From positions 62,001 to 126,000 of the IMG/VR virus record IMGVR_UViG_3300036770_006893: 64,000 nt of DNA, one strand, 5' to 3'. A program made the position numbers and the translations under genes. Below, in pieces: positions 7,195 to 62,415 of this stretch. The notes beneath the pieces are model-generated. The model had not been told where the DNA came from, ran no database searches, and worked only from the letters and a program-made list of their open reading frames with translations. How positions within the stretch are numbered: the first letter of the stretch is position 1; every line of letters starts with the position of its first letter.

Positions 7195-7995
7195 ATGAAA
7201 AATTTCTTTTTTATTAGCGGACTTCCACGTTCCGGCAGCACACTGCTTTGCAATATATTGGCCCAAAATGATAACCTATTTGTTAGTAAAGCAACTAGCG
7301 GATGTCATGATATTTTATTTAACGTCAGGAATCAATGGGATAAATTAATCGAGCATCAAGCAGAGGGCGTTAATTACAATCAGCTAAAGCGAGTGCTACA
7401 ACACATACTAAATAGCTATCATTCTACAGAAAAAAATAATATTGTAGATAAGGGAAGAGGATGGTTAAGCCTTATAGAAATGACTGAATTTATTCTGGGA
7501 TATGTTCCAAAAATTATTGTCCCAGTGCGAAACGTTAACGAAATACTAGCAAGTTTTGAAAAATTGTGGAGAAATAGCACTGGTCAAAGTCAATGGCTCT
7601 TTGAGCAAAACGACTATTTCAAAGCTCAAACAATGGAGGGGCGTTGTGATATATGGGCTAATAATTCTCAGCCAGTTGGCTTGGCTTTTAATCGTGTAAA
7701 AGATGCCATAGATCGCGGATTCAAAGATAGGCTATTATTTGTAGAGTTTGACGAGTTAACATCTCAACCCTTTCAAACTATGAAAAAGGTGTATAATTAT
7801 TTAGAACTACCATATTTTGAGCATAATTTTAACAATGTTGAACAATACACAAAAGAAGACGACGAAGGAATACATAGGATCCCAAATTTACATAGTATTC
7901 GTCCTAAAGTAGCTCCCGTACCACATGTTAGCAAACAAATCTTGGGAGAATTTTTAACACAAAAGTATAGTAACCTAGAACTATGGAGAAATTAA
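7195..7995 (+). CDS. Sulfotransferase family protein (P-loop, PAPS-dependent)
   Basis: 5'-phosphosulfate-binding loop FISGLPRSGSTLL, a DK motif, 3'-PB-like VRNVNEILASFEKL, and FVEFDELTSQP...KKVYNYLEL typical of Sulfotransfer_3-type proteins. Confidence 0.85.
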   Translation: MKNFFFISGLPRSGSTLLCNILAQNDNLFVSKATSGCHDILFNVRNQWDKLIEHQAEGVNYNQLKRVLQHILNSYHSTEKNNIVDKGRGWLSLIEMTEFILGYVPKIIVPVRNVNEILASFEKLWRNSTGQSQWLFEQNDYFKAQTMEGRCDIWANNSQPVGLAFNRVKDAIDRGFKDRLLFVEFDELTSQPFQTMKKVYNYLELPYFEHNFNNVEQYTKEDDEGIHRIPNLHSIRPKVAPVPHVSKQILGEFLTQKYSNLELWRN

Positions 7996-29100: not shown

Positions 29101-32100
29101 TCCTATGATGCCAACAAAACCGGCCCCAAACATAGAAACATATAGAGAAAATCCAAAATTATGGAACGGATTTAAAGACTCTAGTGGTTTTTGGTGGAAT
29201 AAAAGAGGAGAATCTGTCATAAGCGCATATGGGACTCCCCCAGTATTGCCAAATTTTCAAGAAAGAATGCAAGCATTTGAGTCTATTGTAAGTGCTTTTG
29301 CCGGGGCGGGCGGAGTAGGAGGTGGTCGCGGAAAACTAGCAGATGTTCGTGGCCTGCCTGCTGGAATGCCAATGCAGAGAAACGCTCCCGGACCATTAGG
29401 AACTAAAGTCGCTATTCCATATCTTATTGGTAGACCAAATCCCAATAATGCACCAAGAGCTAATTCAATGGGTCTCACATTAGACGCGATTAGAGATCCG
29501 CTAACAGGAAACTACTACGTATCAGATACTCCCGCAAGAAATATTACTATTTCTGGACGCCAAGGATTACCAGCGCCAAAAACTAGACAAAGAACAAAAT
29601 CACCTCTAGATTTAGAAAATGGTAAAATACCAGATTCTATTACTAATCCCAAATCCAAAGAATTTATGCATCTTGCGATAAAAGAAATGATTGGATATAC
29701 TGAATTCATGAATCTGGTTAAGCTAAAAGTACAAAGATCAGATAGGACATACTCTAGCTTATTAAAATTTTTAGCCTTAGATATATTTCCAAAAGGAAAT
29801 GCTTATGGAGTTGATTCTCTAGATAAAGCTATTTCATTTTTTAATACTCCAGAAGGTATAGAATTATATAATACAAAAATATCTCCAAAAATAGGCGTTG
29901 TTCCAGAGATAGGTGGATATAACGCATCTATAATTAATCAAAATTCTAAAACAGGTGGCGGAGGCATTACAGGAAGACTATTAAAAGAATTATTTCAACA
30001 AAATATATTTCATATTAGTAAAAGATCAGCAAATGTTCCAGACGATCTTAATTCCAGAATGGCGTCGTTGATTCCCCCAACAGCTGGATTGCTATATGAT
30101 GACAATATAGCAAAACTATTATCTTCCGCTGGCGTTACGCCAAAAGTAGATTCGAATAGAGTTAGTTATGTATTTGATGTCGCTGAAGCAGGGAAAGACT
30201 GGGGGTTACTTACTCCAGATCAAAGGGCCCATCTACAACAATTTGCTCCAAAAGCAACTGGCAGCGAATCATCTAATATGAAAAGAGGTCAGCTTAGGAC
30301 ATCATCCAGAGAAAGATTAGGTGATGGGCCGCCTAGCTTATCGAAATTTGGAACAGCCACTCCTAAAAAATCTTTTCACGGATCAGGATCAGAAATTATT
30401 CAAGTAGACCCAATGAAGCTGAACCAGGGTATGCTTGGTGAGGGTTTTTATGTGGGTTTTGATGCTAACGAAGCACCTATTAATTTTTTAAAGATGAGAT
30501 TAGACAGCTGGTTACTAGCTAACAAGCTAAAACCAGGAAATATTACACCAGAGCAATTAGCGCAATTTAAGGGTGGTATATATCCAGTTGATATATTAGG
30601 AGGCATTGATGACTTTTTGGCTGCTGATCAAATTCTAAAAGACAATCCGGCAGCGTTAGCAAAAATAGAAAATATATACAAAGACTTAGGACTAAGAAAA
30701 GTTTCTCTTGGACCAATAGAATATAAAAATGATCCAACGACAGGAAGAGCAAAAGCAGTAAGAACAGAAGGACCGCTTGATCTACCATCTGCCACAGTTA
30801 TGCAGGTTTACGACAATATTCAAAACCAGCTAGCAGCTAAATATGAAACTGAATTTGCTGGTAAATCCAATATTCCTGATCCAAGATTTGAGGCGCTCAC
30901 AAGATCAGCTACAGATATGAGAAATATATTTGTAAAATATGGCATACCCGGATTTACCGATTTAAATAATGCTCGTAGTCAAGGCTCGATGGCAGCTATA
31001 TTTGATTTGAATAGAATTAAATTAGGTAAGGCATATATTCCTGATAAAATACTCAAAGAAATAATGATGCCCATTGATCAAAATACTTATAAAGATATTG
31101 ATGGCGACTTAGAAATATTAGAATCTGTAAATAAAAAGAAAGGAGGTATAATTTATGCTAGCAAAGGCCAGTTTATAAACTTCCAACCTCGTGGCACCGA
31201 TACTGTTCCCGCAATGTTAACGCCTGGAGAATTCGTAGTTAACCGAACGGCCACACAGAAAAACCTACCTCTGTTAAAAGCTATTAATAGCGGTGTTGAC
31301 GGATATAGCAATGGAGGAGTTGTTTATTTAGCTGCTGGTGGCAGGCCACAGCGTACAACTCGAGATAAAAATAAGCTTGATATTAGAGAAATAGATAATA
31401 GATTCAGGTCGCAAATGACCAGTCGCAATGCTCAACAAATGGCCGAGGCCGCCGCAAACAGAGAAGGCAAGCTATGGGTATTCATGGTTAAGACTAGAGA
31501 TAATAATGGCGCAGAAACAACGGGCTTTTTAACAAAGGATCCTAATAACCCCAATCAGCCGGCACCAAAAAATATTCCGCCACAAACAGAATCTTTACTT
31601 GCGAATAGACTAGATGAAATATTTACTCTAAGAGCAAGAAATGAAAAAGAGGCCATGGATGCCTACAAAGAGATGAATGTAGCCGGACTGTTACCTGAAG
31701 TCAAACCAGCCTCAGCTCAACAAGCACTGAACAAGGCTAGAAAAAAATGGATGCAGCAACCACTATATGCCAAGATTTTTGATGAACTAGCTTATCAAAT
31801 TAATTTAGATCGAAATCAATTTAGCATATTTAATCCTGATTTCTTCAATCGAAATGTTAATGTTGATGAAAATATAAAGCCAATTATGGCTATTGTTGAT
31901 AATATGGATCCCAACAACCCCGCATCTGTTGCTTTGGGCGTTCCAGCAATATTAACTAAATTAAGACCAATAGTTCAAAGAATTAATTATTTGCGACACA
32001 TTATTAGAAACAATGAGCAGGCCCTAACAGCAGTTAAGAGTGCGATAGCCTCAGGCCTAAATATAAACGATCCTGCTAATATGAGAAAAGCTTTCGAAGG

Positions 32101-32974: not shown

Positions 32975-35900
32975 ATGAATCAACCAATACAAATTTATAA
33001 TAACATAGGCTGTGAGTTTATTCTAGACAACAATAATTTTATTATCGGCACAGCTTTAAAAGGCTATAATACTCTCGATAATAATCATGTGGGTAGTTAT
33101 ATTCCCTATTTAGTAAGAAATATATCTAGAGATCAGATTATAGCATGGGAGATAGGGGTTGGGTTTGTAGAGAAGGCTGATAGTAAGATCATAGTTTCTA
33201 GACATAATGTAATACAGTCATATGGGTCGATTGAGTCCCCCGGACAAAAAAACTTCTATTTATTTGCTAATGCCGATGGCTATAATAGTGGATTCAACAA
33301 CGTTGTTGTTGCAACAAGCGATTTTTTTGCTGGGACATCCAGAGCCTGCTACTTAATAGAAAAAAACGGTATCACTAAAGTCAAACTAATTGATCCAGCC
33401 AAAGCTAAATCTGTAGAACTTCAATTTAAGATTATATCTAGCGATGAAAATAGTGTAGTAGAGATATCTGATGACCACAGTTTTCGCTATGTGTTAAAAT
33501 ATAATCAAAAATATCTATCTATAGTCTCCGATGGAAGTAAGTGGAGGATATTACTTAGTCCATCATCTAATAGTAGCAATATGCTCTCAGCACTATCTGC
33601 CTCAAGCGATTTTTCTATACTTGGTGATCCAGCCGGAGACGATGGGTCATTTCAGTACAAGGTCGGAACTAGTTTTTCTGGCGGTCCCGTATATTTAGGT
33701 TCTGATGATAAGATTCTTTTTGGTCCTGATAGCATAGAATCTAACGCTAAAAGCATTATACCAACTTCTGGTAATTATGACACCATCATTAATAATACTA
33801 AAAATAAATCGGACTTTATTGTTCATGGAAGTGGTGTGCCAGATGGTTATCTACCAAAAAATCTTATTTTCACCTATGATGGTAAGCTTGGATTAAATCT
33901 CCCTTCTGGGGCTAAGCCACAAACTGCTCTTCATATAATCAACAATTCTTGCAGAGAAAGCATCAGGATCGAAAATCTCAGCGACTGTCCAACGCATATA
34001 CCCAACGTCACACTATATCACAAGCCATCTGGTGTTTCTGATGATACTATTATAAGTAAAGTTGTTTTCGCTAGTCGCGACTCCAATAATAACAAAAAGG
34101 ATTATGCTGTACTACAGACAACCGCTCAAAAAGTTGATCCGTCGGATGCTACTGGAAAGTTTGACTTGATTTTGGCGTCCGGATATCAGAGCGTAAACAC
34201 ACTTTCTTCCGATCCGTTGTCTACTGTTTTAGGCTATTTATCTGATTACTATTTGGTTGCTAACAGCACATCTGGTATTCGAATGATAGCACCCAGATCA
34301 AATAATCAAATTTTTGTATCAGATAGTTTAGCTGGTATGTCAGGTGGTATTGTATCAGTTTCTGGAGGTAGTGCTGTAAATATCACCTCCACCGGAACCA
34401 TAAATCTTAATCAAGCCGTTATTATTAACGGTATTAATATTGGTATGCCTTATATTGAACAAAATAAAGTATTAGCAGTTAATTCTCAAGGTTTACTGGC
34501 ACCAGCTACTAATTTCACTATTAATGGCGTAGGATCAAATAAACTATTGACTACTGACGCTAGTGGTGTTGTTACTGGTGCTTATAGTGACGATTCATTT
34601 TTGCTCACAGATGGCGACATAACATGGAGTAAATTTCCTCCTAGACTAGGCAATGTTTGTTTGAGACAAATTACTCCCATAGAAGATTTTCCCGTTAACG
34701 AATTTGCTGTAGGAGATCAGCTAGCAATAGTAACAGGAGTTGCACCAAATCAAGGCACCATATATCGCAATATAACTTCTATAGACAGAACAGATGATCT
34801 TATTAGCTATATCTTATTAGATCAAAACGTTACAACTATTGATTCTACCATATTTTGTTATTCGATCACCAAAGGCGGCGTGTTAACTATTCAGGTTAGA
34901 ACAGAAGACGGCACAGAATCCCAGGCTACTGCCACCATATTAAGCACAAGACCAGACACAAACACAGTGTTCAATACTAAACAAAAAAATATTAATTTCA
35001 CCGTATATGGTATTGAGGACACCCCAGCTCTACATATTATGGCCAAAGCAACTACGGTGCCTGTAAATTCTGGAGTTTATAACAAATTTGCTACTATCGA
35101 TGAGCCATTTGCTAGCATACCGAATCCACTAGGAGTAGGAATAGGTACTTCTCACAACAGTGTTAATTTTGCCAATATCCCTTCTGATTTATGGCTAAAC
35201 AAAGTTACATCTGTTGGTACTAATGGTAAGCCAAGTTTCTACGGCACATATGATCAAAACGGAAATGTTTACGAATGGGTAGAAGACACAAACCCAGCAT
35301 CTATATCGATAAACCAGAATGTTTGCGGTGGCTCATGGAAAACTTTAACTGCTGAGGGTTTGAGGAGTGTAATTTCTACACCAGCTAATTTAGCCTTAGA
35401 AGATGTTGGATTTAGAATATGTTCTAGATATGGTTATTCTGATGATGCGATATCGCCAACCATCGGACTTTCTTTTGTTGCTGTTTCTAATTTAGATAAT
35501 ATAGAAGACAACTCTTTTATATATACAGAATCATACTCTAATCGAGACGAATTAAATCTTCCTCCCGTACCATCATCTATTATTAATTTGGGCAAGGTTC
35601 AGCATCCATATCGCATATCGACATACGAGATTACCAACGCTCAATATATTAAATTTTTAAACTCGGTTAATAAAACTGCTATTTTCGATCTGTATAACGA
35701 TAATATGTCATCCGCTATAGTTGGTGGAATACTGAGGTCTGGTTCTGATGGCGACTATGTTTATACAACCAAAACCAACATGGGCGACAAGCCAGTTGTG
35801 TATGTAAATTACTTAAGCGCTATCAGGTTTATCAATTGGTTGCATAACGGTGCTCCCGATAGTGAAAATTTTGAATTAGAAGATATCGAGGATGGTGCGT

Positions 35901-38602
35901 ATACTATAGTGTCTAATCCTTATGGGACCACAGTATACAAAAACCGAGACCAAAAATACTGGTTGCCAAATTTGAATGAGTGGCATAAAGCTGCTTATTT
36001 TACTCCTGTCGTTAGCGACGCAGAGGCAGATGCCTCCGCAATAATGATTAGGAGAGAGCTGCCTGTTGAAATTTCTAGCGGTAACTTAGCATCATTTAAT
36101 GTTGGTGGAGGTATTTATGCTGATGAGCTAGTAATTGGAACCAATAATGATTCAGTCGGCTCTTTACTATCCACACTAGATGAAAATGGGTCTGGTATTA
36201 CTAGCATTAATTATGGTTATAATAATTATATGTTAAATATAGGACCTTCAGGTGCTATTGCATTAGATTCAGAGACTGAAGATTGGGATGGCGAACACTC
36301 AACATTTATATCTCCCTATCCTACAGAGGGGATACAACTAGCTACCAGCGGAACAATTAAACTTATTAGTCCCGAGTGTGTAAAAATCAGCGGATTATGT
36401 AGCGACCACTTATTTACTAAAAATATAACTTACATAGACCCAGACACCGGTGATCCTATAGAAGGAGGTCAGTTTCCAGGACCAAATGGTGGCTTTATCT
36501 ATAAAGACGTTACAACTGATTTGCCACTAGCATCTAATTTACTTTCTTATGTTGAGGCAGACAATGTGACGGGTATTGTGCTAGCTGGCTCAGAACCAAA
36601 TAATGCTATATATGCAAATAATCTGGGTATTTTATCTAGTTATGAGTTTGTAAGATTTGGCGCTACTGTTGAAGGACTAGATGGAGAAGTGGTCGCTATA
36701 GGTAATGTTGAGGCAACACCTGGCGAAACTGATGGAGAAGGCAATGAGCAGCCTAGTATTCCACTAGTGGTCGAATCCATTAGAATCGGCCCGCCGTTAC
36801 CAGCTTTTTCTGGAAGCATTTTGACCCATAATGGTACGGATCTTGCTGTTTGGCAACCAGCGAATTATATGCGAGCAGATGGTATGAGTTGGAATAGATA
36901 CGAGCGTCGTGCAGTAGAAATACTTTCTGGTAATGTCTTACGATTCTCTAGTCTGTCTCAGTCAGATGGTGGTACTGGTGCTGTAACTAGAGAGGCAATA
37001 GAGCAAGAATTTGGGCTAAATGATACTATTGCTATTTATAATCAGCAAAGAGAAGTAGAATATGTAAAAATAGCAGCTATAGTACCAGTCGGACAAAATG
37101 ACGAAGATATTAGCATTTTTAGTAACGAGGAAGCACTAGAGATAATAGTCTGCCCCAGCTTGCCCGATGCCTTCATAGATAATAGCTTGGTGCCAAATTC
37201 TGATCCTTCTGTATACATAGGTTACGCTTTCTCTGTTGACAAGGGTGCTCATCTCGATATGTCAATAGAGCCCAGCGCCACCAGCAGGTTTTCCTGTGAA
37301 ACAGATGCTGATTTAGAAAATTCGCCGTATGGCTTTAAGCCAAGCACAATAAATACAATAAGTATTCGTCCTGGCACAGATACTTCTTTTAATAAGCTTG
37401 GCGAAGATATCGATTTTGCTATTTATAATTATGTGCAAACGCTTAATGATAGATATGAAGAGGAGCTATTTGCATCAAACAGTCGAGGCAATCCATCTGG
37501 GCTTATTCCAGCACTATATATAGATTCTTTTATTGATTCATCTTTTATTGGCACCATAGGCAGTGGCGTATTTGCTGACAACAAGAGATTATTTGCTTCT
37601 GGCATTATCCCAGACCCTAGTGCAAAAATCACAATAAATACAAAGCAACCTCATATTGTAACATCATTATCTGGTGTGAAAACAGGTCTTATTTATCCAA
37701 ATAGCGTTTTACCTACCGGTAAACTAGTGTCTTCGGAACAAGACATAGCCACATATGCAGACTTGACCATTAACGGATATACATATAGTAGTGGAATTAT
37801 ATCAACAGAAATTGTATTAAAAAACACAGAAAATAGAGAGTATATACCCAATGCTCCTTTGACTATTAATTCGTTGGGTCAAATAGTGTCTATAGTCCCT
37901 CCCCCACAACCCACTATTTCAGATCCTCCAACTAATGTTTCTGGTTTTGCCGCAAATAGTAGTGTTAGACTTCAATGGAACCAGCCAGAAAACACCGGCA
38001 ACACCCCGATTATAGACTATGTGATAGAGTACTCAGAGAATGGAGAAATATGGGAGGTATTTGAACACGACCCATCGGTTGATACCTCTATATTAGTCAC
38101 CGGGTTACAAAATGCCATAGATTATAAGTTTAGAATATATACTGTTAATGAAATTGGAACCAGCGTCCCATCAGAAGCAAGCGATGCTATAAAACCAACA
38201 GCAAATGCTCCTACGCAGCCAACCAATCTTACAATTATAAACAGATCAGAATCACAAATTATTGTGGATTGGGCGATACCTCAGTACCAAGGTCCCACGG
38301 GTCAATCTGTAGTAAATTATATTGTAGAATATGCAAGTTCTGTAAGCCCTCCTGGTCCTTTAACATGGACGACTTGGCCAGAGTTTATAGGTACCACAAC
38401 TAATGTGACACTAACCAACTTATCTTCTGGTCCTACTTACTATATAAGAGTGAGGGCACAAAATTCCATCACTTCAGGAGCTTATGCTTCTATTTTTTCG
38501 GTAGGATCAGATAACGATATTAATCAGCCTGTTGCGCCAGAGCCCGAGCCCGAAGAGGATTGGGATTTTGGCGAAATAGCATTTACAGGAGTATGCTTAT
38601 GA
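32975..38602 (+). CDS. Large tail fibre/tail-tip protein with circularly permuted FGE-sulfatase (SUMF1-like) domain and two C-terminal FN3 domains
   Basis: N-terminal fibre-anchor-like segment (...IAWEIGVG); FGE motifs at about 35158-36001; FN3 x2 at about 37920-38490 (LQWNQP...DYVIEY...YKFRIYTVNEIGTS; VDWAIP...NYIVEY...YYIRVRAQN). Confidence 0.75.
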   Translation: MNQPIQIYNNIGCEFILDNNNFIIGTALKGYNTLDNNHVGSYIPYLVRNISRDQIIAWEIGVGFVEKADSKIIVSRHNVIQSYGSIESPGQKNFYLFANADGYNSGFNNVVVATSDFFAGTSRACYLIEKNGITKVKLIDPAKAKSVELQFKIISSDENSVVEISDDHSFRYVLKYNQKYLSIVSDGSKWRILLSPSSNSSNMLSALSASSDFSILGDPAGDDGSFQYKVGTSFSGGPVYLGSDDKILFGPDSIESNAKSIIPTSGNYDTIINNTKNKSDFIVHGSGVPDGYLPKNLIFTYDGKLGLNLPSGAKPQTALHIINNSCRESIRIENLSDCPTHIPNVTLYHKPSGVSDDTIISKVVFASRDSNNNKKDYAVLQTTAQKVDPSDATGKFDLILASGYQSVNTLSSDPLSTVLGYLSDYYLVANSTSGIRMIAPRSNNQIFVSDSLAGMSGGIVSVSGGSAVNITSTGTINLNQAVIINGINIGMPYIEQNKVLAVNSQGLLAPATNFTINGVGSNKLLTTDASGVVTGAYSDDSFLLTDGDITWSKFPPRLGNVCLRQITPIEDFPVNEFAVGDQLAIVTGVAPNQGTIYRNITSIDRTDDLISYILLDQNVTTIDSTIFCYSITKGGVLTIQVRTEDGTESQATATILSTRPDTNTVFNTKQKNINFTVYGIEDTPALHIMAKATTVPVNSGVYNKFATIDEPFASIPNPLGVGIGTSHNSVNFANIPSDLWLNKVTSVGTNGKPSFYGTYDQNGNVYEWVEDTNPASISINQNVCGGSWKTLTAEGLRSVISTPANLALEDVGFRICSRYGYSDDAISPTIGLSFVAVSNLDNIEDNSFIYTESYSNRDELNLPPVPSSIINLGKVQHPYRISTYEITNAQYIKFLNSVNKTAIFDLYNDNMSSAIVGGILRSGSDGDYVYTTKTNMGDKPVVYVNYLSAIRFINWLHNGAPDSENFELEDIEDGAYTIVSNPYGTTVYKNRDQKYWLPNLNEWHKAAYFTPVVSDAEADASAIMIRRELPVEISSGNLASFNVGGGIYADELVIGTNNDSVGSLLSTLDENGSGITSINYGYNNYMLNIGPSGAIALDSETEDWDGEHSTFISPYPTEGIQLATSGTIKLISPECVKISGLCSDHLFTKNITYIDPDTGDPIEGGQFPGPNGGFIYKDVTTDLPLASNLLSYVEADNVTGIVLAGSEPNNAIYANNLGILSSYEFVRFGATVEGLDGEVVAIGNVEATPGETDGEGNEQPSIPLVVESIRIGPPLPAFSGSILTHNGTDLAVWQPANYMRADGMSWNRYERRAVEILSGNVLRFSSLSQSDGGTGAVTREAIEQEFGLNDTIAIYNQQREVEYVKIAAIVPVGQNDEDISIFSNEEALEIIVCPSLPDAFIDNSLVPNSDPSVYIGYAFSVDKGAHLDMSIEPSATSRFSCETDADLENSPYGFKPSTINTISIRPGTDTSFNKLGEDIDFAIYNYVQTLNDRYEEELFASNSRGNPSGLIPALYIDSFIDSSFIGTIGSGVFADNKRLFASGIIPDPSAKITINTKQPHIVTSLSGVKTGLIYPNSVLPTGKLVSSEQDIATYADLTINGYTYSSGIISTEIVLKNTENREYIPNAPLTINSLGQIVSIVPPPQPTISDPPTNVSGFAANSSVRLQWNQPENTGNTPIIDYVIEYSENGEIWEVFEHDPSVDTSILVTGLQNAIDYKFRIYTVNEIGTSVPSEASDAIKPTANAPTQPTNLTIINRSESQIIVDWAIPQYQGPTGQSVVNYIVEYASSVSPPGPLTWTTWPEFIGTTTNVTLTNLSSGPTYYIRVRAQNSITSGAYASIFSVGSDNDINQPVAPEPEPEEDWDFGEIAFTGVCL

Positions 38603-39128: not shown

Positions 39129-40397
39129 ATGTTTGAAACAATGAGGCTAAATAATAAAAATTGTGAATGCGGAATACCTTTAGGGTTCACTGAGGTAAGA
39201 CCAGCTAAGACCAAACTAGGAGATCTTATAAGCGTACAGGTTAACAATTTTGTTGTCACATTCACAACCCTAGTTGATCATACAATAAAAGCTGGCGATT
39301 TAATAGAAATTGTTTCGGGTGGTACACTAGACTCTGTTTTTGTTGGAAGACATACTATAACAGCCGTTGGTTCTCTTAATCAAAATGCGGCAAATACTTT
39401 TTCCTTTGGGTTAAGAACTCCTGATGTTACAACCACAGAGGTATCCGGTTATGTATATACGGTCCCAAATATAGAGAATAGTGATTCATATGTGATTAAT
39501 TTTACAAAAGAATTATCTATACCAGACAATTCGGATGTTGTTATTACTCCTGAGTCTTATACAATTCAAGGAGGTAATAATTTTATACCGACTACTAGCG
39601 TTAGAATTAGTTCTCTCTATACAACCTCTAGTAAAACAATTATTAAACTTTCTATTACTAATAGTTTTGGCAAGGTCCTATTCACTGAATATAAACAAAT
39701 TGTTTGCTCAAGATCCGCAGACTCTCCATGCGAAATAATTGCTCAAAAGCCTATAGTACCTTCTTTTATTTATCTAAACAGACAAAATAATTGGACATAT
39801 AAAAATAATGGGTTTTTGATTGCGCAATTTATTCCAGATAAAAATCTAAATGGCTATGAGAATATTAAAATTAGGTTGCCTAAACCAGCAGATGGCATAT
39901 TACCAAGTAATACTAACTTTGATAGATTAATTTTTACATATGATCCACTATTAGGTCAAAGCAAAGGTATCTCTAAAGGACAGGTTAAAACAGTAATTTT
40001 AGAAAATCCAATAAGTGCATCTTTACAAAAAAATATTTCTATAGATGAAAAATTTAATAGATTTATCGTATCTTTTTCTGGTATGTCGGTTCAACAATTA
40101 GAAAACCTACAAATAGAATCACTTTCACCAGGAGAGACTCAGACCAATAGGATAACACTTAAAGATGTAGGAGAGGTAGCGCTCTATATCTCTGAACCAC
40201 AAAGCATACCATCTATTATGTTTTTATCTTGGTCCGATACTAATCAAGTAGGCTATTTTTTTGGACAGCTACTATATGATTATCATGTTCTTAATAATAG
40301 CGATATTGTTGTAACTTTTAAAAATAATAATATAGAATATAGAATATCTCCTTTCGTAACCGTCGAGGACTTGTTTAATTATGATTATTCAGGCTAA
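39129..40397 (+). CDS. Hypothetical tail-associated protein
   Basis: ATG at 39129 just after the upstream stop; beta-rich; in the structural cluster. Confidence 0.55.
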   Translation: MFETMRLNNKNCECGIPLGFTEVRPAKTKLGDLISVQVNNFVVTFTTLVDHTIKAGDLIEIVSGGTLDSVFVGRHTITAVGSLNQNAANTFSFGLRTPDVTTTEVSGYVYTVPNIENSDSYVINFTKELSIPDNSDVVITPESYTIQGGNNFIPTTSVRISSLYTTSSKTIIKLSITNSFGKVLFTEYKQIVCSRSADSPCEIIAQKPIVPSFIYLNRQNNWTYKNNGFLIAQFIPDKNLNGYENIKIRLPKPADGILPSNTNFDRLIFTYDPLLGQSKGISKGQVKTVILENPISASLQKNISIDEKFNRFIVSFSGMSVQQLENLQIESLSPGETQTNRITLKDVGEVALYISEPQSIPSIMFLSWSDTNQVGYFFGQLLYDYHVLNNSDIVVTFKNNNIEYRISPFVTVEDLFNYDYSG

Positions 40398-42129
40398 TAG
40401 TAGCGTTTTAACCTACAAAAGTAGTCAGGTTCTGGACCTTATGCATCCGCCTTCTCCGGACTCGGATAGGCAACTATACTATGATTATAATGCATTTATT
40501 AGTGCTATAGATGCCATATACGCAACTCAAAATAAAGACGGTCACATACCGGTTTTCAGAACAGTATCAAGCTCATCTGATCCGGATATGCTGATACCCG
40601 ACTCTAACAGTACTCTTAAGTTCCTAATTCCTGGGCAATCTTATTTGTTTATTATAAACTCAGACTCTCACCTTCCTTTAAGAATACCAAATCCCATAGG
40701 ATTAAAAGATTTTGTATCTTACGCACCAGAAAACACAACCTATAATGACGACAGCTGCTGTCCAGTTCTTAGCTCTGAAGAAGTAGTAGTTAATTTAACA
40801 CCAGAAAGTGGCACATTTCATAGAATCAGAGCAGATATTCAAAATGCAATAAGTAATGAAATATATAGCTACTCTATATCCCCAGTATATTCAAACTGGC
40901 CAGCTAAACTAAGTCCAACTAGCGGAGAAATAGTCTTAGCTTCAACAGCAAATGATCTTGGTAAAACTAGTGGACATTTAGAAGCAGTTTTTTCATACTA
41001 TCCGTCACTAACGCACGACCTATCTGCGTCAATTCCATACTCCCTCAATAAAGTAGTTGACTCTAATTATTATACAGAAAATATATTTAGCATAATAAAT
41101 TTGAGCATTTTTAATAGTAAATGCAGTGTCTATGACAAAAATTTGATCCTGTCTTGTTCCTCATGTATAGATCCGCATAACTGTCCAACTGTGGAAATGA
41201 TTGCTAGTGGCAACAAAGACAACAATACCAAATATATAATTACTACAGTTAAAAATCTTCCAGATAATAGTAGATTTATGTATAACTTTTCTACCGATTC
41301 GTCTAATTGCACAGCAAATATAACTCCTCTTTCTGGTATTATAGATAGTCGTAACGCTAGCTATGCTATGACACCTTTTAATGCAAATGATTCTGCAGAA
41401 TCAGAATCGGTTATGACCAAGCCATCAATAACCATATATAGTGTTTTTGAACATAGGGATAGCCTAGCGTCAGTTGGTAATTTGTTACCAACTTCCAGCA
41501 TTGTGGCAGACCCAGCAGTTGATACTGACCTATATACCAATTTAATTTTTTCTCTGTATCCTATAGGAAATAATTATTGTAATCCCGTATATAAAAAAAT
41601 GCTACTTGAATGTGAGAAGTGTTTTCCTTCTACAGATTTTAAAACAACCATAAAATTTGATAATCCTGAATATAGAACCACTTTCAGCTCTTTACTTGGC
41701 CCTGGATTTAGATATCCTTCGCTATTTGATGACGGGGTCATTTCTACCTTCAATGGATTGGGTATTACTAGCGATAAAGCAGCTAGCATAAATCGTAGGC
41801 CAAATTGGGAACATAATGCCTATAATAGTGGCTTAGGAGAAGAATGTTGCAGTAAACCTATTAATATTAGTTTACAGATTACAGATGCTGTTTCTGGCGA
41901 GCCATATAGTTATGATTTTTACTCATATCCAGATATAACCATTATTCCCAGAAGCGGCAACTTAAGCTTCGACGAAGGATCTGGTAGTATATCGGTTCTT
42001 GCTTATCTGGACGGTCAAAGAAGCTCGGCGGTTCATGTCGTATTGAATCATAAAAAATCAAATCAAAAAGCTTTTGATGGTACTGTTATCAGATGTCCGG
42101 AGTCTTGGATAGTAGAAGAAGACGTATAA
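40381..42129 (+). CDS. Hypothetical Cys-rich tail-associated protein with three repeated beta modules
   Basis: Three YSY..(L/I)xPxSGxI modules, each bracketed by CC/CP and CxxC motifs. Confidence 0.55.
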   Translation: MIIQANSSVLTYKSSQVLDLMHPPSPDSDRQLYYDYNAFISAIDAIYATQNKDGHIPVFRTVSSSSDPDMLIPDSNSTLKFLIPGQSYLFIINSDSHLPLRIPNPIGLKDFVSYAPENTTYNDDSCCPVLSSEEVVVNLTPESGTFHRIRADIQNAISNEIYSYSISPVYSNWPAKLSPTSGEIVLASTANDLGKTSGHLEAVFSYYPSLTHDLSASIPYSLNKVVDSNYYTENIFSIINLSIFNSKCSVYDKNLILSCSSCIDPHNCPTVEMIASGNKDNNTKYIITTVKNLPDNSRFMYNFSTDSSNCTANITPLSGIIDSRNASYAMTPFNANDSAESESVMTKPSITIYSVFEHRDSLASVGNLLPTSSIVADPAVDTDLYTNLIFSLYPIGNNYCNPVYKKMLLECEKCFPSTDFKTTIKFDNPEYRTTFSSLLGPGFRYPSLFDDGVISTFNGLGITSDKAASINRRPNWEHNAYNSGLGEECCSKPINISLQITDAVSGEPYSYDFYSYPDITIIPRSGNLSFDEGSGSISVLAYLDGQRSSAVHVVLNHKKSNQKAFDGTVIRCPESWIVEEDV

Positions 42130-42160: not shown

Positions 42161-42853
42161 ATGAGAATAATTTTTTCAAATTTTGCCGATAGAATTGTTA
42201 AATTGTGCTGCTCCAAATCTAATAATCCAGACCTTCCTCCAGAATGTCTGGAAGATGTTTTTCCCTCGCCTAGTCCCTCCCCAACTCCATCTGTGACGCC
42301 ATCAATCACTCTATCTATTACGCCGTCCATGACACTATCCGTCACGCCTTCTATGACGCCTACGCCATCACCTACCCCAAATGTTGTGTTGCCACCAACG
42401 TCCTATGTTTGCGATCCTTCTGATAATTTTTGCTTTTCTGCACTAGAGCCACTTAACTGTGGCTGTGTATTTAATGCTCCTGAGGTCTATGTTTCTGGAG
42501 AACAGTCCGGTTCGATATGGCGAAGAGTTTCAGTTTCATATAATGGCCCAGATGGTCAGTGCGACAATAATGGTGACTGCTCTATGATCGTCATCCGTGG
42601 TTCTGTGTCAATTAGATATCCTGGTTCTCCGCTATCAAATTGGATCATAGGCGAAAAGGTAGATATGGTATTAGGATACGCTCCCAGCTTTATAAATACG
42701 TTTGGATATATATGTGGCACAACACTAATATCTTCAAACGAGGGTGTATACGAAGGCATAGTCCTTAGGTGTACGCCACCCGCCCAACCTCCTGATCAGC
42801 CAGATCCTCCAGACACATCTAATTTAAGCGTAGTATTTATGAGGGCATTATGA
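42161..42853 (+). CDS. Hypothetical protein with Ser/Pro/Thr (TPS) low-complexity linker
   Basis: SPSPSPTPSVTPSITLSITPSMTLSVTPSMTPTPSPTP tract; Cys-rich flanks. Confidence 0.6.
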   Translation: MRIIFSNFADRIVKLCCSKSNNPDLPPECLEDVFPSPSPSPTPSVTPSITLSITPSMTLSVTPSMTPTPSPTPNVVLPPTSYVCDPSDNFCFSALEPLNCGCVFNAPEVYVSGEQSGSIWRRVSVSYNGPDGQCDNNGDCSMIVIRGSVSIRYPGSPLSNWIIGEKVDMVLGYAPSFINTFGYICGTTLISSNEGVYEGIVLRCTPPAQPPDQPDPPDTSNLSVVFMRAL

Positions 42854-44286
42854 ACATAGTCAATAAAGCTATCCAACAGCTTGGGTTCGGTATAGATGCG
42901 TCGATAAATTCCGTTATGCTTGGATATAAGTATATTGGCGGTATTAAGACTAATAATTTATCTATAGTTTTTAATGTCGATAATAAAAAACCTATTTCGG
43001 AACTGGATCCATCGGAAGTGATTCCACAACAAATTACTATCGATAATGAATTATATATAACGGATGTTATAGAAGACAACTCTCCTATTAAAGCTCTTAC
43101 TTGCTATACTGATTTTGTAAACGAACCCGAGATACTCAAGCTTCAGGGCAATCCCACACTATCAATACCTATTAAGGGAGGTCAAGAAATTGTTCAATTT
43201 CCGACCAAATGGACTCCTTCAGGGGGGTCGTATTCTATTGCTGTTGGCACACTAGGGTTTATGGCTGTTGATAATGAAGATAATCGGCCTGTAGGAGTTA
43301 CTAATGCTCATGTTGCATGTTTTTCGTACCTATTTAACTCTCTAAGAATAGAAAATAGCGACGCTATATCTAATCCATACAATTTATATGAGCCTATAAA
43401 CTGGATTGTTGATAATAATTCATATCCAGCAGGATTAACCGCTAGAAACGGAACCAATATCTTAGCTCCAGCTGACCGACTTGCCACGCGAATCAAGAAA
43501 TATTACCCCATATATAATACAAACATTAATCTTTTAAATTATGTGGATGTTGCTTTGGTTCACCTAAATGGCTCTTATCTTAACAGCAGTTCTTATATGA
43601 TACATTTGCCTCAAGGTGTTCCGGATGTTGGATTCATGACTTTTGCAACAACAGAGGAAATAGATGGTCTGCTGAGCGCTTCACCAAAACCCCCTATATA
43701 TAGCACTGGTCGAACCACGGGTCCTAAGGGATGGGGTTCAACATCCTCGTGTAAACTAGAAATAGACGGATTATTTGTTAGGGTTAACATAATGTTCCAA
43801 GATAGAGATAGGGTTATGGCTGCGCAATACGACGATATTATTAGATTTAGATACGAAGACTACAGTAATTTCCCAATTGCTCCAGGAGATTCAGGCTCGG
43901 CTGTTTTTGCTAATATAGGAGGTCAGTATAAAATAATTGGTCTAGCATTTGCTGGTAATTCTGGTAGTTTAACTAATCCTTCTACGAGTACGCATTACGG
44001 CTATGCTTGCAGAATAGACCGAATAGCCCAATTAATGAATATTAGACCTTGGGATATTTCTTATAATCCAAATTTTAGTGAATTAAATACTACTAATTTT
44101 GAGGTGTACTCAAGACCATTTATAGATGGTGGTGTAAATGATATTAGTGCTACAGTCAATAACAATACTTATTTTAATGTTGGCTTAGCAAATACTAGTA
44201 ATTTTGTGTTATCAAACCAATACAATACAAACACAGATATTACTAATATTAGGACCCTATCAATAGATATTTCTGATAGCATATAG
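42850..44286 (+). CDS. Trypsin-like (clan PA/S1) serine protease
   Basis: Complete triad: TNAH (His codon 43309), VDVAL (Asp 43546), PGDSGS (Ser 43891); also GTLG, GRTTG and IIGLAFAG motifs typical of Nal1-like S1 proteases. Confidence 0.9.
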   Translation: MNIVNKAIQQLGFGIDASINSVMLGYKYIGGIKTNNLSIVFNVDNKKPISELDPSEVIPQQITIDNELYITDVIEDNSPIKALTCYTDFVNEPEILKLQGNPTLSIPIKGGQEIVQFPTKWTPSGGSYSIAVGTLGFMAVDNEDNRPVGVTNAHVACFSYLFNSLRIENSDAISNPYNLYEPINWIVDNNSYPAGLTARNGTNILAPADRLATRIKKYYPIYNTNINLLNYVDVALVHLNGSYLNSSSYMIHLPQGVPDVGFMTFATTEEIDGLLSASPKPPIYSTGRTTGPKGWGSTSSCKLEIDGLFVRVNIMFQDRDRVMAAQYDDIIRFRYEDYSNFPIAPGDSGSAVFANIGGQYKIIGLAFAGNSGSLTNPSTSTHYGYACRIDRIAQLMNIRPWDISYNPNFSELNTTNFEVYSRPFIDGGVNDISATVNNNTYFNVGLANTSNFVLSNQYNTNTDITNIRTLSIDISDSI

Positions 44287-44304: not shown

Positions 44305-46440
44305 ATGACAATAAATAATGATCCAAATATATTTTTTGGAGCTCAAAACAATGGTGGTACGCGACTTGCTCCTCCTGTGCCTGTTAGTGTTTTCTGGGGA
44401 GACGCTAAGATATCCGATATTACTGGCCCAACTCCATTTGTGGATATTAGTAACAGAATAAACTTATCATCTAATGGCACACCAGAATCTGTAACTTCAA
44501 CCATCACACTTACTGGTAAAATTCTTAGAGCTACTGATTTTGAGTGGGAGAATCCAGAAGAGGGTCAAGACAGAAGTGTTTCAGATAACAAAGGTATTTC
44601 TGGCACTCTAGAAGCTGTTCAGGGACTAGAGAAACTTTTTAAAAAATGTCCTATTAATGACTTTAAAATAAAATGCTCTAATCCAGACGTAGAAATGTAT
44701 GTGGCTTCTGGAGCAAGACTTGTGGATCTTTCTTTTTCTAGAACAGAAAATAATTGGGGTAAAACCGTTGATTTTACAATATCTTTAGAAAAAACATCTT
44801 CGGTAGATGATGATCCAACAGAAAATGTTACTGAGCGATCTGAAACGTGGTCAATAGAGCCTCTTGATGAAACGGTATATGCTAAATTTATTACCAAGTC
44901 TAATTTGAGGAGTGAGTGGTCCAACCCGAATATGAAGCCAGTAGCACCTAGCATAAATAACACAGTACCACCAGGAGCTGTTGGTGCTCAAGGCGCAGGA
45001 TCTATGGATTTACAGATCTTATCTGTTCCTCAATTTAGAATAACAAGAAGATTATCCGCAAAAGGCATTTCACCTCCAATTACTCCAAAATGTGAATGCA
45101 CAACAAATCTTGATGGTTCAACAACATGCACAGAGCCAAATCCAAATATTAAGCCATCCAAGCCGGGTGATGGCTCGTGGCTATCTGCTAAGTTATGGGT
45201 CGATCAAAAACTAAACGATTTATTTAGTAATAGTCGTCCAACAGGATTACTTCCGTATTTTACAATTCGTAGACCAACAAGCCCAGATATGTTTGGTCCT
45301 TTTCCAAGTACGTACTTATATGACCATAATAGGTCTATTAATATAGATATCAGTAACGGAACATACGAAGCTACGGATACATGGCTAGCTATGCCAACAG
45401 GAATGCCGTATATAGAGACTTATACAGTTGAAACATCAACTAGTTTAGAGATGATAAAAACTGTTAGGGTGGCTGGTAGTGTACAAGGATTGAGTATTGG
45501 TAATATAGATATCATGGACGGCGGAACTACTGTTGCAGGCGCAGCCATATTTCCAACAGGAATGTCGCCAACTGGTAATACGCCCCCAGGCGAAGGGTTA
45601 ACTTTTCCTCCACAACCTGGTATTAATTTGGGATACAGTTTACGAGACGCAATGAGCGGAAGCATAAGAGCATATAATTTGCCAGATGTTGGTAGCAACA
45701 TTATGAGCGCTAATACTCAAATGTATAGCAGTAAATATATAAACGCTTTGAGTGGATGGTTACATGATATTAAGCCGTATATGTACAGACGAGCTAGTAT
45801 GGCCATGAATAGCGCAGATAGAAAACAGCCGTACGTACCAGCCTATGAAACCAATCCTCCTAAGGTTCCTGAAAATCCTATTTACGCAACAGAGTCTTTA
45901 TTAAGTGTTATACCAGTATCAACAACAGAGGGTCATGATCCTAAAAAAGGAACAATATCGTTTACTTATGAGTATAATAATAAATTTAATGTAATTAGTG
46001 GTGTTATTAGTGAAAATATCACCATAACCAATGATGGCCCAGCAGATACTATAGCCGAAACCCAGGTTCCAGGCAGAGAATTGGGCCCAATTATGACCAA
46101 AACTGGCACAACGGCCACTAAAAAAACAATTAATATAGAGGTAGTAGTTATGACTCCAACAGGAGTAGAAGGATTTTTTGTAAATAATCCATCTTGCCCA
46201 TTATATACTGGTGGTTATATATATACTACGATTAATAAATTGATTGAGGGATACAAGCCGTTCGGAATAGCACAGGATGTTGCTTTATTTGGAAGATATG
46301 CTCAATCTAAAAATCAATTTGGCCAAGCATATAAAACTTCCGATCAAGATACTTGGACGCCAACACAAGGAAGATATAATAGGACCGTTAGTTGGATATA
46401 CCAGCAATGCTCTAATCAGCGGTTTTATTTGGATCATTAA
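44305..46440 (+). CDS. Probable tail-tip/baseplate structural protein
   Basis: 711 aa, beta-strand rich (TITLTGKI, VDFTISLE, ISFTYEY, YNRTVSW); downstream of the TMP; AGGATAA RBS. Confidence 0.5.
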   Translation: MTINNDPNIFFGAQNNGGTRLAPPVPVSVFWGDAKISDITGPTPFVDISNRINLSSNGTPESVTSTITLTGKILRATDFEWENPEEGQDRSVSDNKGISGTLEAVQGLEKLFKKCPINDFKIKCSNPDVEMYVASGARLVDLSFSRTENNWGKTVDFTISLEKTSSVDDDPTENVTERSETWSIEPLDETVYAKFITKSNLRSEWSNPNMKPVAPSINNTVPPGAVGAQGAGSMDLQILSVPQFRITRRLSAKGISPPITPKCECTTNLDGSTTCTEPNPNIKPSKPGDGSWLSAKLWVDQKLNDLFSNSRPTGLLPYFTIRRPTSPDMFGPFPSTYLYDHNRSINIDISNGTYEATDTWLAMPTGMPYIETYTVETSTSLEMIKTVRVAGSVQGLSIGNIDIMDGGTTVAGAAIFPTGMSPTGNTPPGEGLTFPPQPGINLGYSLRDAMSGSIRAYNLPDVGSNIMSANTQMYSSKYINALSGWLHDIKPYMYRRASMAMNSADRKQPYVPAYETNPPKVPENPIYATESLLSVIPVSTTEGHDPKKGTISFTYEYNNKFNVISGVISENITITNDGPADTIAETQVPGRELGPIMTKTGTTATKKTINIEVVVMTPTGVEGFFVNNPSCPLYTGGYIYTTINKLIEGYKPFGIAQDVALFGRYAQSKNQFGQAYKTSDQDTWTPTQGRYNRTVSWIYQQCSNQRFYLDH

Positions 46441-61627: not shown

Positions 61628-62415
61628 TATTTATCCTCTATGGTAAATGAAGAAATCTGTTTATTGTTATTCTGTATCTCATCTATCGTACTCAGCAATT
61701 GCTGTAAAATGTTTTCAGCTCTAGTAGGAGAAAAGTCCTTATATTGTTTTATTCTAATAATATTCCATCCTTTTCCCAAAATTAATCCTGATTTTTTATT
61801 ATCGTATGCTTTATTTTTTTTTAACGAATCCTCACCCCAAACCGGAGCAAAATGAGACGGTCCATCAACCTCTATAGCTGTGTTAATAGTAGGGAGAAAA
61901 AGGTCTATTTGCAACTTGGTATTTGTAAGAATTTGTTCTTTATGAAAGTCTACTCTATAGCCCATTTCTATTAGTTTTGTCAATAAGAAGTTTTCTAATT
62001 TAGAGCCAACCTTACTAGCCTCCCTGACTGCTTTATTAGCCATCGATAACAGCTGTTCTTTTTCGTCCTCTGTTTTTAAATTCCATGCCGCTCTAGCTTT
62101 AGATTTCCTGTCTTTTATCTCTTCCTCCGATAACTGGCTCCAAGACTTAAGAACAGAATTACCAATTGAACGTTTAGTTGCTTCGCTTCTCTTACGTCCT
62201 TTGGTTGGGTGTGTGTGTTTTCCTGTGACAAGGGCGTTTTTTTGCGCCTCAGATTTATTGCGTATATTTATTTTTAAACGTATGGCATCTCGTCTAATTT
62301 TATTAGCATATGTCCCACATGCCTCCGCGATGTCTGCAAAACTTTTATTTTCATCAATATACAGTTTTTTGATTAACTTTTTCTTTTCCTCATCACCCAG
62401 CTGATTGTATAACAT
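61627..62415 (-). CDS. Putative free-standing homing endonuclease (NUMOD3-like motif plus Vsr/DUF559-type nuclease domain)
   Basis: N-terminal HTH-like segment; GRKRSEATKRSIG (NUMOD3-like); SKLE...IDLFLP..NTAIEVDGPSHF...D..K...L..KGWNIIRI nuclease signature. Confidence 0.75.
   Translation of the reverse strand: MLYNQLGDEEKKKLIKKLYIDENKSFADIAEACGTYANKIRRDAIRLKINIRNKSEAQKNALVTGKHTHPTKGRKRSEATKRSIGNSVLKSWSQLSEEEIKDRKSKARAAWNLKTEDEKEQLLSMANKAVREASKVGSKLENFLLTKLIEMGYRVDFHKEQILTNTKLQIDLFLPTINTAIEVDGPSHFAPVWGEDSLKKNKAYDNKKSGLILGKGWNIIRIKQYKDFSPTRAENILQQLLSTIDEIQNNNKQISSFTIEDK

Follow-up and report, generated by a model that had tools for sequence, protein, structure and literature searches.

A predicted serine protease in the tail-gene block of an uncultured phage is associated with a conserved C-terminal tail on the gene immediately upstream

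We analysed a window of 64,000 nucleotides (positions 62,001 to 126,000 of the 224-kb uncultured phage IMGVR_UViG_3300036770_006893) and found in its tail-gene block an intact ORF for a 478-aa chymotrypsin-fold serine protease, P0001. This protein belongs to a large family that Pfam does not capture, with at least 901 homologs, nearly all on uncultured phage contigs. In most loci of this family, the gene immediately upstream, which is otherwise unrelated between phages, ends in a Pro/Thr-rich linker followed by a short strand-like motif and 1-8 further residues. The protein encoded just upstream of P0001, P0121, has this tail, whereas the tape-measure-like protein of the window does not. Hence, the protease probably acts on its upstream neighbour rather than on the tape measure. 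The gene-order association is demonstrated, but the mechanism is inferred.

Results

The protease and its locus

The original prediction described an S1 serine protease with a full His-Asp-Ser triad, no signal peptide, and ATGA coupling among the tail genes that follow the tape measure, and this observation was confirmed. The ORF is open (genetic code table 11) and the codons of the three catalytic residues were verified (Table 1). The triad is invariant in an alignment of 35 family members and present in 63 of 65 unique members from viral loci. No N-terminal hydrophobic signal is visible by inspection of the sequence, and the structural model places residues 3-14 in a helix of a folded N-terminal domain. 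The protease gene lies six genes after the tape-measure-like ORF, which carries a PhageMin_Tail domain (E 1.5e-22), and the window also encodes fn3/lectin-like proteins and a match to a tail-fibre N-terminal domain. The whole block, from genome positions 43368 to 122202, is co-directional and begins with terminase and portal. The assignment to S1 requires some caution, since the fold is clearly chymotrypsin-like but P0001 scores only 17.6 bits against Pfam Trypsin (PF00089), below the cut-off of 20.6. Only 3 of 35 family members match Trypsin at E <= 0.01 (best E 3.2e-4), and Trypsin_2 (PF13365) was not listed for any of them.

Table 1. Features of the protease locus and of the tape-measure-like ORF (window coordinates)
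Position	Strand	Feature	Description
17162-32965		Tape-measure-like ORF	5267 aa
42161-42853	+	Upstream gene (P0121)	230 aa from the first ATG; a public gene call starts at Met65 (42353) and gives 166 aa; orphan protein with two Pro-rich linkers and a conserved C-terminal tail
42251-42406	+	Linker of P0121	Pro/Ser/Thr-rich, aa 31-82
42776-42820	+	Second linker of P0121	Pro-rich, aa 206-220, directly before the tail motif
42821-42850	+	C-terminal tail motif of P0121	Last 10 aa, NLSVVFMRAL
42841-42853	+	Translational coupling	GAGGG (42841-45), then ATGA start/stop overlap (42850-53): ATG of P0001 at 42850, TGA of P0121 at 42851-53
42850-44286	+	Protease gene (P0001)	478 aa
42850-43164	+	N-terminal domain	aa 1-105, one helix and four strands
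43165-44082	+	Chymotrypsin-fold protease domain	aa 106-411; His154 (43309-43311, TNAHV), Asp233 (43546-43548, NYVD), Ser348 (43891-43893, GDSGS); GRTTGPK motif
44083-44283	+	C-terminal mini-domain and low-confidence tail	aa 412-478; in relatives, extensions of up to about 1500 aa with lectin/adhesion domains start after this point

Fold and relatives

An AF2 model of the protein (pLDDT 86.7, pTM 0.90) was compared with known structures using Foldseek and VIA, which returned Nal1, alpha-lytic protease, streptogrisins, and HtrA. The closest is rice NARROW LEAF 1 (Nal1), with Z 29.4 and rmsd 3.6 A over 327 residues, aligning model residues 1-411 to Nal1 residues 94-457. Alpha-lytic protease and the streptogrisins (MEROPS S1E), including Lysobacter L1/L5, follow with Z about 18.5 and rmsd 2.4-2.5 A over about 190 residues, and HtrA proteases with Z 12-14. 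The N-terminal domain (helix 3-14; strands 19-29, 32-43, 61-64, and 67-75) is equivalent to the ATP-binding/trimer-interface domain of Nal1 (residues 89-172; PMC12012508) and likewise directly precedes the protease domain.

At the sequence level these relations are much weaker. Identity to Nal1 is only 14-15%, and a phmmer search of P0001 against PDB sequences gave only chance hits. The family profile ranked Nal1 first in the PDB, sharing GTLG...TN-HVA and GDSGS, but at a sub-threshold E of 0.046. NAL1_N (PF25608) was matched by 5 of 35 members (best E 6e-4) and Nal1_C (PF25819) by none, although the nearest non-viral ESM Atlas clusters are bacterial Nal1-like proteins carrying these families. 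In Nal1, residues 1-88 stack two trimers into the active hexameric cage (PMC12012508), and this region is absent from the phage protein, which begins at the equivalent of Nal1 residue 94. Complex prediction for two copies of residues 1-411, with the family alignment, returned a score of 0.00, which is not evidence either way on oligomerization.

None of the homologs was found in cultured phage records. A tblastn search of 50,697 phage records with P0001 and three distant family members returned a single hit, 25% identical, in an uncultured 484-kb phage. This is a short 335-aa relative beside a Thg1-like gene and outside any fibre context. A scan of genome contigs with one family peptide pattern found no relative, a result that covers only that pattern.

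The protease domain is at the extreme N terminus throughout the family: it starts within the first 9 residues in 120/120 database homologs and is N-terminal in all 81 viral loci. Where C-terminal extensions are present, they carry TIG, Laminin_G_3, FG-GAP, DUF285, BNR, and cohesin-like domains, and in one homolog FGE-sulfatase. No fusion between the protease and an upstream protein was found among more than 200 family members.

A conserved tail on the upstream gene

The conserved association, seen across about 90 loci, is with the C-terminal tail of the gene immediately upstream. A Pro/Thr linker is present in 34/52 upstream neighbours, against 2-12% at positions -6..-2 and +2..+6, 29% at +1, and 23% in the protease gene itself. 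The linker is followed by the motif [LVP]-[NSKR]-[TV]-[IL]-[FY]-x-x-[WF]-x(1-8)-COOH. Under a strict pattern derived from these same loci, the motif is present in 34/53 upstream genes, against 0 at the eight neighbouring positions (-4 to +4 otherwise), 2/332 genes farther away, and 8/3835 internal windows. Among unique tails, 44/48 carry the motif, and they belong to 32 unrelated upstream protein clusters of 94 to more than 3300 aa. At least one residue always follows the core. These patterns and the scoring matrix were derived from the same kind of data, such that only the test on held-out metagenome loci is independent. This test confirmed the association (Mann-Whitney p = 1.7e-10, with 21/38 above the control 95th percentile). 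Still, a minority of family members (about 10-25%) lack a recognisable upstream tail. The codons of the tail vary, are not purine-rich, and show no ribosome-binding-like signal, which led us to reject an RNA-level explanation and indicates that selection acts on the peptide.

In this genome, P0001 is the single protease copy and P0121 has the single high-scoring tail, with the highest motif score among the C termini of all 266 ORFs (13.4 against 5.8 for the next). This tail was itself part of the training set of the matrix, and it is a weak variant of the motif, with Ala replacing the last aromatic residue. Residues 80-230 of P0121 have no homologs besides itself. Other upstream proteins carry BNR/sortilin, RCC1, and Kelch propellers. 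In L046, which has a chain of protease paralogs, each of the five proteins followed by a paralog ends in a tail that reads like the motif by eye, though with weak scores (-5.2 to 4.4, below the cut-off of 5), and the two chain-ending paralogs end differently. One paralog without the triad still follows a tail-bearing gene, so catalysis may not be needed for every pairing. Mutual information between tail positions and protease columns was dominated by shared ancestry and did not point to the active site.

The rest of the neighbourhood is poorly conserved. BLAST found almost no conserved neighbours apart from a 582-aa protein and FGE-sulfatase-domain proteins in four loci. PHROGs and Pfam gave nothing useful for most neighbours, and we read the repeated phrog_15511 matches as low-complexity Pro/Thr linkers. 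Clustering of the proteins had to be tightened because single linkage chained unrelated ones through shared domains. We rejected the idea that 336-aa proteins near the protease in two phages are the same capsid protein, as well as homology between two upstream proteins.

Discussion

We propose, with moderate confidence, that P0001 is a Nal1-like, alpha-lytic-protease-related serine protease of the tail-fibre/host-recognition module, presumably catalytically competent, and that its ligand or substrate is the C-terminal tail of the protein encoded immediately upstream, here P0121. In this view, the protease domain at the free N terminus binds the short strand (T-I-F/Y-x-x-W/F) that lies between the flexible Pro/Thr/Ser linker and the free carboxyl end, and probably cleaves after the last aromatic residue or within the linker. 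This would join or mature consecutive gene products of a fibre, and in relatives the protease protein would then carry lectin or adhesion domains distally. Our data establish the fold (from the model), the conserved triad, the strictly N-terminal position, the types of fused domains, and the association of gene order and motif. Peptidase activity, physical binding, cleavage, presence in the virion, and the joining role are inferences, drawn without direct evidence of binding or cleavage and without a virion proteome or cultured relative to show that the protein is structural.

The interpretation in the original prediction is partly supported. An intact serine protease in a tail/fibre gene block is supported, and the secondary suggestion that it matures fibre proteins fits our results, but its main proposal, that the enzyme cleaves the tape measure at repeated junctions, is not supported and appears very unlikely. 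The two genes share a co-directional block, and the 5267-aa protein has two weak internal motif matches, but these are close to chance, its C terminus lacks the motif, and self-BLAST revealed no internal repeats. BLAST of the window's proteins found no relative of the tape measure within 10 kb of the protease in 80 related loci, and PHROGs detected no tape-measure family in the five large upstream neighbours tested. The contexts of relatives vary, and in the closest large relative the gene sits near a ClpP-like gene and opposite tail genes. Three features of the family also point away from the tape measure, namely the protease domain at the extreme N terminus, the lectin or adhesion modules in the C-terminal extensions, and the tail on the gene immediately upstream.

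The prediction's other alternative, a virion-displayed enzyme, cannot be excluded and remains possible, although we consider it less likely than our reading. Such an enzyme would cut host surface proteins (S-layer, pili, outer-membrane proteins) or peptidoglycan peptide bridges during adsorption and penetration, targeted by its lectin/adhesion modules. The fused TIG, ConA-like lectin, BNR, FG-GAP, DUF285, and FGE-sulfatase domains, the resemblance to the alpha-lytic and Lysobacter L1/L5 proteases, which are bacteriolytic, the location in a tail-gene block, and the strict conservation of the triad favour it. However, it does not explain the conserved upstream tail, the strictly N-terminal position, or the lack of fusions with upstream proteins, and the catalytic domains of known tailspikes are central or C-terminal rather than at the anchoring N terminus. 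The two readings would be compatible if the tail merely anchors or inhibits the enzyme. A more doubtful possibility is that the tail occupies the active site, as the C-terminal tail of the pro-region does in alpha-lytic protease, keeping a virion enzyme latent and tethered until host contact. The gene pairing, the structural relationship, and the requirement for a free C terminus of the upstream protein, inferred from the lack of fusions, would fit, but there is no structural or biochemical evidence for it, and the 1-8 variable residues after the core look more like a leaving group or spacer than a fixed inhibitor end. An intracellular role in host takeover, counter-defence, or late-protein turnover seems very unlikely. 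Nal1 is itself an intracellular regulatory protease that cuts disordered regions (PMC12012508), and the 335-aa relative lies outside fibre genes, but the window's subfamily is embedded in structural or fibre-like blocks, coupled to Pro/Thr-linked propeller/lectin proteins, and itself fused to adhesion domains.

A more speculative and unlikely extension of our proposal is that the protease is a protein "rivet": it would cleave off the few residues after the last aromatic of the upstream tail and keep the new C terminus, either as a product complex or as a stable acyl-enzyme/transpeptidation product, joining consecutive fibre proteins head-to-tail by an enzyme-made lock. This would explain why the triad is invariant, why a free C terminus with a short variable leaving group is always present, why the protease domain is always at a free N terminus, and why tandem paralogs form gene chains, as in L046.

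Receptor-binding modules are the least understood and fastest-evolving parts of uncultured aquatic phages, and here a single conserved, easily recognised protein marks them and comes with a predicted partner peptide on the neighbouring gene. If the pairing is physical, it gives a rule for reading which giant, otherwise unannotatable proteins belong to one fibre and in what order, it suggests a new assembly principle in which a protease fold acts as a connector or lock, and it offers a peptide-plus-domain pair that could be used as a protein-joining tool. It also gives a viral and bacterial context for the Nal1 protease type, so far studied only in rice.

The two-part architecture is already known from Nal1 and bacterial Nal1-like proteases, but Nal1 is a plant cytosolic/nuclear regulator, whereas the phage protein has an extra C-terminal mini-domain and sits in a structural context with a conserved upstream tail peptide. 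We propose a new grouping of N-terminal Nal1-like proteases paired with an upstream C-terminal tail, in which the gene immediately upstream, on the same strand and closely spaced, ends in a Pro/Thr linker plus the strand motif and 1-8 residues; P0121 ends this way and overlaps the start of P0001. Alpha-lytic protease and the streptogrisins share the core double-barrel fold and a GRTTG-type motif, but are secreted bacterial pre-pro-enzymes, while the phage-encoded protein shows no signal peptide by inspection and no cleavable pro-region, its N-terminal domain being conserved and folded with the enzyme. Phage prohead maturation proteases (S77, S78, ClpP-like S14, U9, and U35) have a herpesvirus-protease or ClpP fold and are encoded beside portal, scaffold, or capsid genes. 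P0001 has a chymotrypsin fold and lies about 52 kb downstream of the portal, a separate ClpP-like gene exists at genome positions 173718-174194, and there was no S77 match in a search whose control was uninformative. The peptidase S74 intramolecular chaperone of tail fibres and spikes (K1F endosialidase, T5 pb1) is similar in concept to the role proposed here, as a serine peptidase dedicated to maturing the C-terminal end of a fibre protein, but it has an unrelated fold and a Ser-Lys dyad, is the C-terminal part of the fibre itself, and cleaves in cis. P0001 is a separate, downstream-encoded protein with no S74 match in Pfam. The gene order and the proposed logic are those of the fibre assembly and tip proteins T4/T2 gp38 and lambda/Mu/P2 Tfa, in which the product of the next gene recognises the C-terminal end of the fibre and, in T2-type phages, stays attached as the adhesin, but these proteins are not enzymes and have no sequence or fold relation to P0001. 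Finally, the HtrA-family proteases DegS and DegP couple a chymotrypsin fold to the recognition of a free C-terminal aromatic peptide of outer-membrane proteins, similar to the recognition proposed for P0001, but they do so as periplasmic quality-control enzymes and through PDZ domains, which are absent here.

An intact predicted serine protease in a phage tail-gene block

The ORF is open and encodes a protein of 478 aa, P0001, in which His154, Asp233 and Ser348 lie in TNAHV, NYVD and GDSGS contexts, as checked at the codon level. Its start ATG overlaps the stop of the upstream ORF as ATGA, with GAGGG four bases upstream, and by inspection there is no N-terminal hydrophobic signal. The genome is a single virus record of 224,357 bp (35.8% G+C), judged complete by CheckV. 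A co-directional block runs from about 43 kb to 122 kb of this genome and starts with terminase and portal. It also contains a 5267-aa ORF with a PhageMin_Tail domain, an 1875-aa protein with fn3 and FGE-sulfatase (lectin-like) domains, and a protein with a tail-fibre N-terminal match. Hence, the original prediction described the gene correctly, as an intact serine protease without a signal peptide, coupled by ATGA and encoded among tail genes.

Coordinates of the features discussed (positions are those of the window, bases 62001-126000 of the record, unless stated otherwise)
Feature	Position	Strand
Sulfotransferase-like gene	7195-7995	+
Tape-measure-like ORF (5267 aa)	17162-32965	+
1875-aa protein with fn3 and FGE-sulfatase domains	32975-38602	+
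P0122 (582 aa)	40381-42129	+
Upstream ORF, P0121	42161-42853	+
N-terminus of the long reading of P0121	42161-42200	
Start of P0121 in a public gene call (Met65)	42353	
Protease, P0001	42850-44286	+
Cys85 of P0001	43102-43104	
Cys301 of P0001	43750-43752	
711-aa protein downstream of the protease	44305-46440	+
Three tandem paralogous genes, just upstream of the window	genome 58698-60840 (15698-17840 of extracted region L086)	
ClpP-like gene, outside the window	genome 173718-174194	-
Six tandem protease paralogs in viral locus L046	L046, 4972-18655	
335-aa relative in an uncultured 484-kb phage (locus L163, LR756508.1)	L163, 5890-6897	

Several genes of the structural region have features of their own. 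The tape-measure-like ORF has its PhageMin_Tail domain at residues 265-470 and no other Pfam match, and if the whole protein sets tail length, the tail would be extraordinarily long. The 1875-aa protein has two fn3 domains, an FGE-sulfatase (C-type-lectin-like) domain at 875-1007 and a purple-acid-phosphatase N-terminal-like domain. Proteins sharing its 744-1009 region lie two and three genes upstream of the protease in four related loci (L007, L012, L013 and L041). In the same four loci, full-length homologs of P0122 (27-30% identity) lie four genes upstream of the protease, making P0122 the only whole-length conserved neighbor apart from the protease itself, although without an assigned function. 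The 711-aa protein downstream of the protease has weak ESM Atlas structural leads to tail-tube-like N-domains (Phi812 tail tube, T4 gp19), Dit-like and DNA_circ_N families. It may be the distal-tail or baseplate hub, but all the scores are below the level that can be trusted. The three tandem paralogs just upstream of the window, of 231-245 aa, all match the same PHROGs (24074, and 8510 “virion structural protein”).

Relationship to Nal1-like proteases

Pfam gives only a subthreshold Trypsin match for P0001, and one PHROG labelled “protease” matches its N terminus. A word-based homolog search found at least 901 relatives, almost all unnamed, of which many lie on contigs of 100-320 kb. In an alignment of 35 members, the triad and several motifs (KGGQE, GRTTGPK, RID) are invariant. 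The AlphaFold model is confident (pLDDT 86.7, pTM 0.90), and its best match among solved structures is rice NARROW LEAF 1 (Nal1), with a Foldseek E value of about 1e-15 and a VIA Z score of 29.4 (rmsd 3.6 A over 327 residues, model 1-411 against Nal1 94-457). This match covers both the protease domain and the small domain that precedes it, which in Nal1 binds ATP and makes the trimer interface (PMC12012508). Alpha-lytic protease and streptogrisins come next, at Z about 18.5 and rmsd 2.4-2.5 A. At the sequence level the relationship is faint: the family profile ranks Nal1 first among PDB sequences, but only at E 0.046, and when all 35 members were scanned, 5 touched NAL1_N and 3 touched Trypsin, none convincingly. 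The ESM Atlas neighbors are viral hypothetical-protein clusters, followed by bacterial Nal1-like clusters. P0001 is therefore a divergent viral branch of the Nal1-like, S1E-related serine proteases, which lacks the Nal1 N-terminal region that builds the hexameric cage.

Two cysteines, Cys85 and Cys301, are conserved in 54/65 family members and are lost together in 4 of the 10 exceptions, and Cys387 is also conserved. This may reflect a disulfide linking the N-domain linker and the protease domain, which would suit an extracellular protein.

Distribution and architecture of the family

No cultured phage record matches P0001 or three distant relatives. The only hit is the 25%-identical, 335-aa relative in an uncultured 484-kb phage, a short Nal1-like protease with the triad motifs that follows a Thg1-like gene, lies outside any fibre context, and has neither Pro/Thr linker nor tail motif (see below) upstream. 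Nal1-like proteases in phages therefore fall into at least two contexts. A scan of species-representative prokaryote genomes with one pattern found nothing, whereas scans of IMG/VR and metagenomes returned 80 and 76 loci.

The protease domain is always at the extreme N terminus: it starts within 9 residues in 120/120 database homologs and is N-terminal in all viral loci. The proteins are either about 400-480 aa long or carry C-terminal extensions, up to 1974 aa in total. These extensions contain IPT/TIG, ConA-like lectin, FG-GAP, DUF285, BNR/sortilin and cohesin-like domains, and in one homolog FGE-sulfatase, which are extracellular binding modules typical of phage receptor-binding proteins. 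The triad is kept in 63 of 65 unique members. One exception is a fragment and the other is one paralog in a six-copy locus.

A conserved C-terminal tail in the gene immediately upstream

The genes neighboring the protease are mostly large, co-directional and unrelated between phages, so the protease is the conserved element of fast-evolving regions. One property of the neighborhood is nevertheless conserved. The gene immediately upstream is on the same strand, with a gap of -56 to +22 nt in the motif-bearing loci, and it carries a Pro/Thr/Ser-rich linker in 34/52 dereplicated loci. The corresponding rate is 2-12% at positions -6 to -2 and +2 to +6, 29% at +1, and 23% within the protease protein itself. 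Nearly all of these upstream proteins end with the same short element directly after the linker, with the consensus [LVP]-[NSKR]-[TV]-[IL]-[FY]-x-x-[WF] followed by 1-8 residues and the stop. Examples of endings are TIFITWEN, VLYTAWK and TVFMGFDIL, and P0121 itself ends in SVVFMRAL.

In the last 16 residues, the strict pattern is present in 34/53 upstream genes, against 0 at the other positions from -4 to +4, 2/332 farther away and 8/3835 internal windows. A looser pattern is present in 47/53 upstream genes, against a background of about 2-3%. Of the unique tails, 44/48 carry the motif, and they belong to 32 unrelated clusters of 94 to more than 3300 aa. These patterns were derived from the viral loci themselves. 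For an independent test, we built a weight matrix on the viral loci and scored 38 nonredundant upstream tails from the metagenome scan. Their median score was 3.5, against -6.9 for 334 other C termini (Mann-Whitney p = 1.7e-10), and 21/38 tails were above the control 95th percentile. Several lower-scoring tails are visibly the same motif with other residues at the flanks. Codon choice at the conserved positions is varied and not purine-rich, so the constraint is on the peptide and not on a translation signal.

In locus L046, a viral contig, six tandem paralogs of the protease domain (861, 895, 438, 421, 434 and 401 aa) form gene chains. They are interleaved with one 920-aa protein and apparently arranged as a duplicated three-gene unit. 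Each of the five proteins followed by a protease paralog ends in a tail that reads like the motif by eye, though it scores weakly on the matrix (-5.2 to 4.4, below the cutoff of 5), whereas the two chain-ending paralogs end differently. The last paralog has lost the catalytic residues, with Asn and Cys in place of Asp and Ser. Where the upstream proteins have recognizable domains, these are BNR/sortilin, RCC1 or Kelch propellers.

Within the genome studied here, P0121 has the top-scoring tail of all 266 ORFs and P0001 is the only family member, but this ranking is illustrative only, since P0121 was in the training set. The globular part of P0121 has no homologs. Its start codon is uncertain, giving a protein of 230 aa or, from Met65 as in a public gene call, of 166 aa. 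The first residues of the 230-aa reading (RIIFSNF) resemble the C-terminal tail motif.

Possible mechanism and alternative roles

Our analysis shows that a protease domain with a free N terminus, apparently active as judged from its sequence and fold, is genetically locked to a free, conserved C-terminal peptide borne on a flexible linker of the preceding gene product, in modules rich in binding domains. The peptidase activity itself, the binding of this strand by the protease and its cleavage are inferences. In this view, the protease probably cleaves after the last aromatic residue, because a short variable stretch always follows it like a leaving group, or else it cleaves within the linker. 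This would mature or join consecutive fibre components, and in relatives the adhesion domains lie distal to the protease. A requirement for a free C terminus of the upstream protein is favored by the absence of fusions between this protein and the protease among more than 200 members, and by the several loci in which the stop codon and a 3-nt gap are all that separate the two reading frames. It is also favored by the gene order, which parallels that of the fibre-tip and assembly proteins encoded after fibre genes, such as T4/T2 gp38 and Tfa. Nal1 cuts disordered regions of its substrate, which is compatible with action on linker-borne peptides. A complex prediction for a homodimer gave no verdict, and covariation analysis was uninformative.

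The original prediction, that the enzyme may process the tape measure or mature fibre proteins, is supported only in part, for fibre maturation. Tape-measure processing is not supported: self-BLAST finds no internal repeats in the 5267-aa ORF, which lacks the C-terminal motif and has two near-chance internal matches, and there is no conserved link to tape measures in relatives, where BLAST found no relative of the tape measure within 10 kb of the protease in 80 related loci and PHROGs found no tape-measure family in five large upstream neighbors. A virion enzyme acting on host surface proteins or cell-wall peptides remains plausible, given the fusions to lectin-like domains and the relation to bacteriolytic alpha-lytic proteases, but it leaves the upstream tail unexplained unless the tail is an anchor or inhibitor. 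A role in head maturation is unlikely, given the fold, the position, and the presence of a separate ClpP-like gene (PF00574, E 4.8e-17) elsewhere in the genome. This gene lies among minus-strand genes, far from the terminase, portal and putative capsid genes at genome 48.5-56 kb, and no prohead protease was recognized next to the portal. A purely intracellular role fits only the short relative in the 484-kb phage.

We found no paper linking Nal1-type proteases to phages or describing a tail-module chymotrypsin-fold protease with a partner peptide, and a survey of jumbo phages discusses other peptidases only. The enzyme class is known, but the viral family, its strictly N-terminal modular use and the paired upstream tail appear to be undescribed. 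As for the host, the structural block includes a sulfotransferase-like gene (phrog_27463, E 1.6e-56) with 31% identity to the annotated sulfotransferase of Synechococcus phage S-SKS1, which hints at an aquatic, possibly cyanobacterial, host and at modification of virion or host glycans.
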